Positions 1,081 through 63,831 of a stretch of DNA of 64,000 nt are shown here, one piece after another. This DNA is from Octopus sinensis (lineage: Eukaryota), in NCBI RefSeq assembly GCF_006345805.1, contig NC_043005.1, positions 13,826,001 to 13,890,000 on the forward strand. Reading direction: 5' to 3'. The notes beneath the pieces were generated by a model that did not search any database, was not told the DNA's origin, and saw nothing but the letters and a program-made list of their open reading frames with translations. Every line of letters begins with the position of its first letter. Position 1 is the stretch's first letter. The position numbers and the translations under genes were made by a program.

Positions 1081-1152
1081 AGACCTGAGCGAAAACAGAA
1101 TTAAGAAAATCGGAGATGATTCTTGGCAACACCTTCAGAATTTAAAGAAATT
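1081..1152 (+). CDS. aGPCR exon: LRR ([24 protein letters not shown])
   Basis: 72-nt phase 2-2 exon, ttttcag|...|gtgagt, LxxNxIxxI LRR consensus. Confidence 0.9.

Positions 1153-63831: not shown

Follow-up and report, generated by a model that had tools for sequence, protein, structure and literature searches.

The stretch of DNA analysed here, called the window below, comprises 64 kb (64,000 nucleotides) of Octopus sinensis contig NC_043005.1, positions 13,826,001 to 13,890,000, and contains the middle 19 exons of one gene, LOC115215701, which is already annotated in RefSeq and encodes an adhesion G protein-coupled receptor (aGPCR). The exons lie on the + strand between 1081 and 63831 (Table 1) and join into 2378 nt, or 792 codons without a stop, with canonical splice sites throughout (AG acceptors at 19 of 19 exons, GT donors likewise at 19 of 19). 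Over 100% of its length the spliced product is 100% identical to residues 326-1117 of XP_029640846.1, an Octopus sinensis protein of 1298 residues named "uncharacterized protein LOC115215701 isoform X3", and the NCBI annotation of LOC115215701 carries exactly the rebuilt exon chain. As exon 1081 opens at an acceptor and exon 63687 closes at a donor, the gene extends both upstream and downstream of the window; the reading frame is open at both window ends, the N-terminal 325 and C-terminal 181 residues of the protein being encoded beyond them. A preliminary description of this DNA, made from its sequence alone, had proposed a hidden gene of 19 in-phase exons with a 792-codon open frame, and our independent reconstruction arrived at exactly the same count and span; that the gene is hidden does not hold, because NCBI annotates the same chain.

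The full-length protein very probably consists, in this order, of a signal peptide, an LRRNT, about 14 leucine-rich repeats (LRRs), an LRRCT, a three-finger domain of the Ly6/uPAR (LU) kind, a SEA domain, a HormR domain (HRM in Pfam), a GAIN domain whose GPS carries the site HL/T, and a seven-transmembrane (7TM) domain of the ADGRG2/G4/G6 type. The same high confidence attaches to the explanation as a whole, in which the gene belongs both to the octopus "group 3" aGPCR expansion and to an older family of molluscs and annelids. The signal peptide, the LRRNT and about 12 of the LRRs are encoded 5' of the window, and most of the fourth transmembrane helix (TM4) through TM7 and the tail 3' of it. 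The preliminary description had placed TM1 to TM4 in the window, of which TM1 to TM3 stand, whereas of TM4 only the first few residues are present: the window product ends in ...SSISAW, and TM4 goes on outside as GVPGIIVMLTLII.

Pfam finds in the spliced product LRR_8 (62 bits), GPS (50.7-53.3 bits) and, for the TM1-TM3 part within the window, 7tm_2 (55 bits), and the full RefSeq protein has seven hydrophobic segments. The LRRs and the intact GPS had been described correctly, as had the motifs on the + strand, PSKILINL at about 60333, LHYF..W..EA at about 63702 and a further 12-residue motif at about 55766. The GPS reads CSCNHL/TSFAIL and is preceded by C..W...W...GC, and in a comparison with PDB sequences the GAIN domain aligns to the GAIN structures of ADGRG6, ADGRG3, ADGRG1 and latrophilin. 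A GAIN domain that ends in a GPS with HL/T and is followed directly by a secretin-family 7TM places the protein, as read from its sequence, among the class B2 adhesion GPCRs. The three-finger domain matches the full Toxin_TOLIP profile at 23.0 bits (cut-off 21.2) and UPAR_LY6 at 17.4 bits, and aligns over the whole domain to Lynx1 (2L03, E 1.9e-4). Its cysteine framework ends in CC....CN, and in a set of 15 homologues that ranges from octopus to annelids 11 cysteines are invariant and a twelfth is nearly so. In an AlphaFold2 (AF2) model this part is beta-rich, with a predicted local distance difference test (pLDDT) score of 61-83, and Foldseek returned no three-finger structure for it. Across the same number of homologues, the Cys, Trp and Arg positions of the HormR pattern C...W...C...R.C...W...C are invariant, and in the Lamellibrachia homologue HRM scores 30.3 bits, above the Pfam cut-off. 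No Ig-family domain was matched by Pfam in the spliced product, where the three-finger and SEA domains occupy the interval between LRRCT and HormR, and neither CUB nor pentraxin was matched in the window product or in the precomputed Pfam list of the full-length protein.

The SEA module corresponds to protein residues 542-637. Pfam SEA is matched by 5 of the 16 homologous modules (best E 1.5e-6), and no rival family recurs; in Haliotis, residues 342-434 cover SEA positions 2-100 of 106 at 23.7 bits (cut-off 26.4). A profile of the module has as its top PDB sequence matches 1IVZ (the SEA domain of a MUC16 homologue), ADGRF1 residues 155-257 and Mucin-1. Two AF2 models were made, one on 10 sequences (mean pLDDT 49) and a second on 15 homologues (mean pLDDT 75.7), and in both the module folds as beta-alpha-beta-beta-alpha-beta, with pLDDT values of 63-90 over both models and 70-90 in the second. 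The assignment as SEA, which had been offered tentatively, holds at the level of the family, and with it the domain order that had been read from the sequence, three-finger domain included. The loop between strands 2 and 3, read directly, contains neither a GSVVV/GSIVA autoproteolysis motif, which only SEA domains that cleave possess, nor an R-X-K-R (R/K-X-K-R) furin site (motifs as in PMC6954182); because these are absent, the SEA domain here is probably non-cleaving.

No observation speaks against the identity of the gene, and the weaknesses of this account lie in domain naming and function. The RefSeq models of LOC115215701 are computational predictions. Pfam LRRCT has no match in the window product, so that the LRRCT is assigned by where it lies and by its pattern of cysteines; HRM reaches 17.9 bits in the spliced product (positions 9-64 of 66), below the Pfam cut-off of 26.2; and the module's own sequence in the window has no Pfam match. 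With its own SEA unmatched and its own HRM below cut-off, the window protein takes both assignments from its homologues. Foldseek gave generic ferredoxin-like matches for both AF2 models, none with E <= 0.001; such matches are compatible with SEA, are not specific to it, and the fold comparison settled no domain name. Finally, analogy alone is the basis for what is said of cleavage at the GPS, the tethered agonist, the ligand and coupling to a G protein.

Among vertebrate receptors the closest counterpart of the membrane-proximal half is ADGRG6. The best ectodomain match of HormR-GAIN is zebrafish ADGRG6 (6V55, E 5.5e-16), in a single stretch that begins with the first residue of HRM and reaches the GPS. 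ADGRG6 has the order CUB-PTX-SEA-HormR-GAIN, and its SEA domain is not recognisable from sequence (Leon et al., 2020; PMC6954182). The two proteins share the arrangement SEA-HormR-GAIN-7TM next to the membrane, and in both the SEA domain is unrecognisable from a single sequence. Compared with solved structures, the full 7TM of the RefSeq protein is nearest to ADGRG2 (2e-47), ADGRG6 (2e-42, third-best, behind two ADGRG2 constructs) and ADGRG4 (2e-37), with ADGRL3 and ADGRD1 at about 1e-26; this ranking is one of best PDB hits, among which no ADGRA 7TM occurs. The ADGRG-like character that had been ascribed to the 7TM is supported by it, and ADGRG2, ADGRG4 and ADGRG6 form the GPR64/112/126 7TM group defined by Scholz et al. 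(2019). The octopus protein differs from ADGRG6 in that it lacks CUB and PTX and has LRRNT-LRR-LRRCT-three-finger in their place, and in that the strand 2-3 loop of its SEA domain has no furin site or GSVVV. By its architecture, then, the receptor is not an ADGRG6 orthologue, though its stalk is ADGRG6-like, and the simpler description suggested by the sequence is of an ADGRG6-type stalk with CUB-PTX swapped for LRR-LRRCT-three-finger, which seems better than that of an ADGRA receptor with its Ig domain replaced.

The ectodomain block is not confined to cephalopods. An exhaustive search with a profile of the three-finger-SEA-HormR block returned 67 proteins, with single-stretch matches over most or all of the block in proteins of 803-1498 residues from Argonauta, Haliotis (two species), Nucella, Aplysia, Plakobranchus, Saccostrea, Lamellibrachia and Capitella. 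The Argonauta match is a partial protein, and a 455-residue fragment from Paralvinella has the full block; the Pfam scan covered the eight proteins other than these two. LRR, GPS and 7tm_2 were found in seven of the eight (those of Haliotis, Nucella, Aplysia, Plakobranchus, Saccostrea and Lamellibrachia), and the Capitella protein has LRR and 7tm_2 with no GPS match. The same scan gave a near-threshold SEA in Haliotis, the HRM already mentioned in Lamellibrachia and a weak Ly6 in Plakobranchus. Partial matches to the block occur in a second oyster, in a scallop fragment and, for the HormR part only, in a nemertean. The block starts at about residue 200-430 in the lophotrochozoan proteins, and neither the cysteine framework of the three-finger domain nor the HormR signature varies among these phyla. 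Two LU-domain 7TM proteins of starfish have been published, LyAr2 (XP_033635706.1, "ADGRG2-like") and XP_033635539.1 ("ADGRG6-like") (PMC11595613). By their published description, both are 7TM proteins of 1000-1100 residues that have a signal peptide and an ADGRG-like name, and like the octopus receptor they contain one LU domain; it lies some 190-300 residues into the chain, a position similar to that at which the block starts in the lophotrochozoan proteins. As judged from these sequences, the receptor appears to belong to an older family that spans molluscs and annelids and is widespread among invertebrates, under-described and ADGRG-like; the literature search yielded no paper in which the complete architecture is set out for molluscs.

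Within octopuses, the O. vulgaris orthologue is 96% identical to the 792-residue query, and that of O. bimaculoides (P0090) is 76% identical over 100% of the query. The latter falls in the same 90%-identity cluster as XP_014773211.1 (A0A0L8HDZ7), to which NCBI has given the name "adhesion G protein-coupled receptor A3". Matching coordinates had suggested A0A0L8GYR2 as the O. bimaculoides counterpart; it is a paralogue, and A0A0L8HDZ7 is the orthologue. According to Ritschard et al. (2019; PMC6408891), the octopus group 3 expansion comprises 21-22 co-localised aGPCR genes with signs of positive selection, and its sites of expression are the suckers, the skin and the axial nerve cord. The text of that study gives their domains as GPS/7TM, with LRRs in 5 of the 22 and a Death domain in a single member, and its supplement lists A0A0L8HDZ7/Ocbimv22016967m as class B, group 3, with LRR, HormR-superfamily, GPS and 7TM, as well as a snake-toxin-like match (SSF57302) for A0A0L8GYR2; the HormR and three-finger rows are not discussed in the text. 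The orthologue of the window gene is thus a listed group 3 member, and by this orthology the window gene is a member of the tandemly expanded family. Two points separate our results from the published account, which calls group 3 octopus-specific with one squid member: SEA was not detected there, and our profile search traces the same ectodomain block to gastropods, bivalves and annelids.

Members of the octopus family vary in their ectodomains. Four paralogues (P0091-P0094) share the full arrangement at 41-44% identity and 97-100% coverage. One of them, P0092 (O. bimaculoides XP_014788728.1, 1283 residues), adds to the full ectodomain a Ser/Gln-rich repeat (STSQQ...) and a C-terminal Death domain (PF00531), which matches the single Death-domain case in PMC6408891. 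In two others (P0016 and P0095) the SEA and HormR cassette is missing and the three-finger domain is followed directly by GAIN; at the O. vulgaris locus of P0016 (L001, 65453-68261), 2.4 kb lie between the three-finger domain and the first GAIN exon, with no SEA or HormR exon between them. In the window, the corresponding skip from 25531 to 42330 would also be in frame, and a cassette-skipping isoform is possible. An isoform of the O. vulgaris orthologue (P0086, 1363 residues) has two tandem, near-identical three-finger domains, which could reflect either an O. vulgaris duplication of the two three-finger exons or an artefact of assembly or annotation.

The exons were derived independently of the preliminary description, by tblastn anchors, enumeration of splice sites and comparison between loci, the latter being three O. 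vulgaris paralogue loci: L001 (P0016), L002 (P0009; OX597842.1:13692717-13736943) and L003 (P0004; 15187040-15243073). A crude join of the clearest C-terminal exons led, in a protein search, to octopus "ADGRG6-like" proteins of 46-53% identity, which in turn aligned to the window by tblastn in 14 collinear blocks between 18.6 and 63.9 kb. A pattern search located three LRR exons of 72 nt, each flanked by strong splice sites, and once acceptors and donors had been listed, the exons from 34328 on could be chained in phase. Pattern and phase scans for further LRR exons between 3.3 and 18.6 kb were negative. The most delicate junction follows the three-finger domain. The consensus donor of its second exon, at 25531, leaves one surplus base, and exon 32898 (exon X) opens at a codon boundary. 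This donor (G/GTAAGT, with the extra base) is kept in four loci, the window and L001-L003. In the intron between 25531 and 32898, a tblastx comparison of the 7-kb sequence was swamped by microsatellites, and a block conserved between L002 and L003 in blastn was informative: it corresponds to an 80-nt linker exon, whose lengths of 80 nt in the window, 77 nt in L002 and 95 nt in L003 are all 3n+2, so that the frame is kept. An 18-exon, 762-codon model that used a weak in-phase donor at 25521 was dropped, since only 25531 is conserved and the linker exon restores the frame. An (AGT)n microsatellite of 494 bp (25593-26086), starting 62 bp past the same donor, prolongs the three-finger exon in frame into a spurious 247-residue poly-Val/Ala open reading frame (ORF) at 25360-26103, a trap for ORF-based gene calling.

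Table 1. Exons of LOC115215701 within the window, with the part of the receptor that each encodes (positions are those of the window).
Encoded part	Coordinates	Strand	Length	Evidence and remarks
One LRR	1081..1152	+	72 nt	Acceptor ...tttttcag, donor GTGAGT; Pfam LRR_8/LRR_4; residue 326 of XP_029640846.1 onward
LRR	3202..3273	+	72 nt	Splice sites; Pfam LRR; RefSeq identity
LRR	18598..18669	+	72 nt	tblastn to P0016; splice sites
Last LRR and LRRCT-like cysteine cap (CxC...C...C)	19746..19912	+	167 nt	tblastn, 50% identity to LRRCT region of P0016
N-terminal half of three-finger (Ly6/uPAR, LU) domain	21144..21229	+	86 nt	Splice sites; profile matches over both three-finger exons
C-terminal half of three-finger domain, ends CCHKDLCN	25351..25531	+	181 nt	tblastn; donor kept in four loci
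Linker exon, SEA start (strand 1, start of helix 1)	28729..28808	+	80 nt	Counterparts in L002 and L003; conserved acceptor; GTGAGT donors; in RefSeq protein
Exon X, SEA helix 1 to strand 2	32898..32950	+	53 nt	Acceptor ttgcag/ and donor /gtaagc the same in window, L002 and L003
SEA strand 3, helix 2, strand 4	34328..34479	+	152 nt	tblastn; AF2 topology; family-level Pfam SEA
First half of HormR/HRM	36965..37076	+	112 nt	Pfam HRM; start of 6V55 alignment; junction yields ATRSC (paralogues ATRYC)
Second half of HormR and linker	39758..39909	+	152 nt	tblastn; splice sites; Pfam HRM; 6V55 alignment
GAIN subdomain A	42330..42549	+	220 nt	tblastn, 46-51% identity to octopus paralogues; relatives match PF26588 or GAIN
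GAIN subdomain A/B	48352..48523	+	172 nt	tblastn; splice sites
GAIN subdomain B	53589..53729	+	141 nt	tblastn; splice sites; weak Pfam GAIN match
GAIN subdomain B	54503..54643	+	141 nt	tblastn; splice sites
GPS with HL/T site and start of tethered agonist (TSFAILT)	55664..55804	+	141 nt	Pfam GPS; motif C..W...W...GC...C.CNHLTSFA
End of tethered agonist and TM1	56663..56763	+	101 nt	tblastn; hydropathy peak at protein residues 1006-1024
TM2	60314..60431	+	118 nt	tblastn; splice sites; PSKILINL motif
TM3, intracellular loop 2, first TM4 residues	63687..63831	+	145 nt	tblastn; LHYF..W..EA; 7tm_2 positions 3-117 of 250

RefSeq lists four isoforms, X1-X4, of 1394, 1298, 1298 and 1250 residues, which differ solely in the copy number of a near-identical 48-residue LRR pair (four copies in X1, two each in X2 and X3, one in X4), and the copies in which they differ lie 5' of the window. 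Exons 1081 and 3202 encode the final copy of the pair, the copies of which (DLS[EK]...) occupy residues 278-373 of XP_029640846.1/P0087. The arrangement suggests a recent tandem duplication of an exon pair, with alternative inclusion shifting the LRR count in steps of two. The exons from the three-finger domain to HRM, those from 21144 to 34479 among them, are retained in all four isoforms, and the single-gene reading that had been proposed is supported.

It could be asked whether two genes have been joined here, an upstream one for a secreted or glycosylphosphatidylinositol-anchored LRR/three-finger protein and a downstream one for a SEA-HormR-GAIN-7TM receptor. Three O. vulgaris models (P0004, P0009 and P0033) are indeed annotated from exon X, starting at the ATG that opens it ("MEHELS..."), and without the linker exon the phases of the three-finger donor and of exon X do not agree. 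Yet these module-first models lack a signal peptide; exon X, with its conserved acceptor and, in the window, TTG as its first codon, is an internal exon without a start. Moreover, the linker exon mends the frame in three loci, and both parts are carried by all four O. sinensis isoforms and by full-length proteins of other phyla, so that we regard the division into two genes as very improbable. At both of the O. vulgaris loci that were checked, three-finger and linker exons lie in frame 4-5 kb upstream of the annotated starts; P0004 and P0009 are N-terminally truncated predictions, and P0033 probably is as well.

A single receptor gene being preferred, its kinship can be read in other ways. With its N-terminal LRR block and cysteine cap and its later HormR and GAIN, the ectodomain follows the LRR-LRRCT...HormR-GAIN plan of ADGRA2 and ADGRA3 (LRR-LRRCT-Ig-HormR-GAIN-7TM); the NCBI name of the O. 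bimaculoides orthologue, ADGRA3(-like), points the same way, and in precomputed annotation PF26588 (GAIN_ADGRA3) matches relatives, mostly weakly. A mollusc orthologue of ADGRA2/3 (GPR124/125) that had lost Ig and gained three-finger and SEA domains would account for these features. It would fit less well with the 7TM, whose solved relatives ADGRG2/G6/G4 lead other subfamilies by 15-20 orders of E value (among PDB hits that include no ADGRA 7TM), or with an ectodomain that has no Ig, has three-finger and SEA domains where ADGRA has it, is closest to ADGRG6 and shows the ADGRG6 arrangement SEA-HormR-GAIN; most paralogues and homologues in other phyla are, besides, named ADGRG6-, G2- or G4-like. 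ADGRA orthology seems to us unlikely, and the claim of the preliminary description that Ig had been replaced relative to ADGRA gives way to the ADGRG6 stalk (PMC6954182). That description had gone further, to a previously unrecognised, lineage-specific and probably cephalopod class of ADGRA type, in which a three-finger domain and an unknown module took the place of Ig, in a combination not met in any described aGPCR family. Pfam-based annotation never lists the three-finger, SEA and HRM domains for these proteins, the literature search found no full mollusc architecture, and the family is strongly expanded in octopus (PMC6408891), all of which could lend such a class some appeal. But the gene is annotated, and the block and architecture occur in Haliotis, Nucella, Aplysia, Plakobranchus, Saccostrea, Lamellibrachia and Capitella, that is, in gastropods, a bivalve and annelids, a spread in other taxa that had been named beforehand as evidence against a new class. 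The group 3 expansion (PMC6408891) and the starfish LU-domain, ADGRG-like receptors (PMC11595613) are published, and 7TM and HormR-GAIN are ADGRG-like, not ADGRA-like. A new cephalopod class is accordingly most unlikely. RefSeq already has the gene, a published family analysis includes its orthologue, and the architecture is widespread; the reading we retain is that of an ADGRG-like receptor of octopus group 3 within an older family.

By analogy with other adhesion GPCRs, the LRR and three-finger modules may bind an extracellular or cell-surface partner while the SEA-HormR-GAIN stalk keeps the receptor autoinhibited. The GAIN domain would cleave itself at HL/T, and force or ligand, by removing or moving the N-terminal fragment, would bare the tethered agonist TSFAILTDV..., the predicted Stachel peptide of the receptor being TSFAILTDVDQN.... 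The tethered agonist would then activate the 7TM and a G protein, possibly Gs as in ADGRG2/G4/G6.

The window as a whole, which is AT-rich (31-38% GC) and holds many microsatellites and much transposon debris, looks like cephalopod nuclear DNA. The intron between TM1 and TM2 contains, at 58601-60019, three copies of a 559/560-bp tandem repeat, identical (100%) over an aligned 300-nt core and each with the same 97-residue low-complexity ORF. ORFs with a GIY-YIG-like motif (...VVY..C....YIG.T...) lie on the + strand at 8784-9419, 26087-26524 and 810-968; the first alone has a Pfam GIY-YIG match (19 bits, below cut-off), and all are probably remnants of intronic Penelope-like retroelements. Antisense in the TM2-TM3 intron, an ORF at 62595-63164 (- strand) with a reverse-transcriptase zinc-binding region (zf-RVT, 26.7 bits, cut-off 27.5) looks like a fragment of a LINE-type retrotransposon, and a 138-residue antisense ORF at 21883-22299 (- strand), in the intron after the first three-finger exon, has two C2H2 zinc-finger-like motifs (weak in Pfam) and could be what is left of a transposon or of a member of the large C2H2-ZNF family of octopus. 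A short interspersed element occurs on both strands, at about 13390-13480, 14960-15055, 31553-31600 (- strand), 37470-37540 and 54195-54260, and adjoins a 184-bp tandem pair at 42931-43299; ARAGORN found no tRNA-like part in it, and a scan of the 64-kb window for tRNA genes was empty.

Standard Pfam annotation reduces these receptors of roughly 1000-1500 residues to "LRR + GPS + 7tm_2", and profile work resolves the remaining 280 residues as three-finger, SEA and HormR domains. It thereby ties to the ADGRG6-type stalk a family that is common to molluscs and annelids, expanded in octopus and reportedly expressed there in suckers and arm nerve cords, and it flags several O. vulgaris gene models as truncated. 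It is tempting to speculate, and we offer it as a tentative idea that is less likely than not to be right, that the ADGRG2/G4/G6 clade had LRR-LRRCT-three-finger-SEA-HormR-GAIN-7TM as its ancestral architecture, certainly no more widely than in Lophotrochozoa unless the LU-domain aGPCRs of starfish prove orthologous, in which case possibly throughout the bilaterians; no paper was found that states this reading or the octopus part of it. Vertebrate ADGRG6 would then have kept the stalk and exchanged the distal recognition module for CUB-PTX, and in octopus this one receptor would have expanded into approximately 20 tandem genes that form a diversified recognition repertoire. If so, octopus ectodomains would vary by the number of LRRs (through alternative or duplicated 48-residue exon pairs), by loss of SEA and HormR, by duplication of the three-finger domain and by a Death domain, and the repertoire may serve surface recognition in the suckers, the skin and the axial nerve cord.

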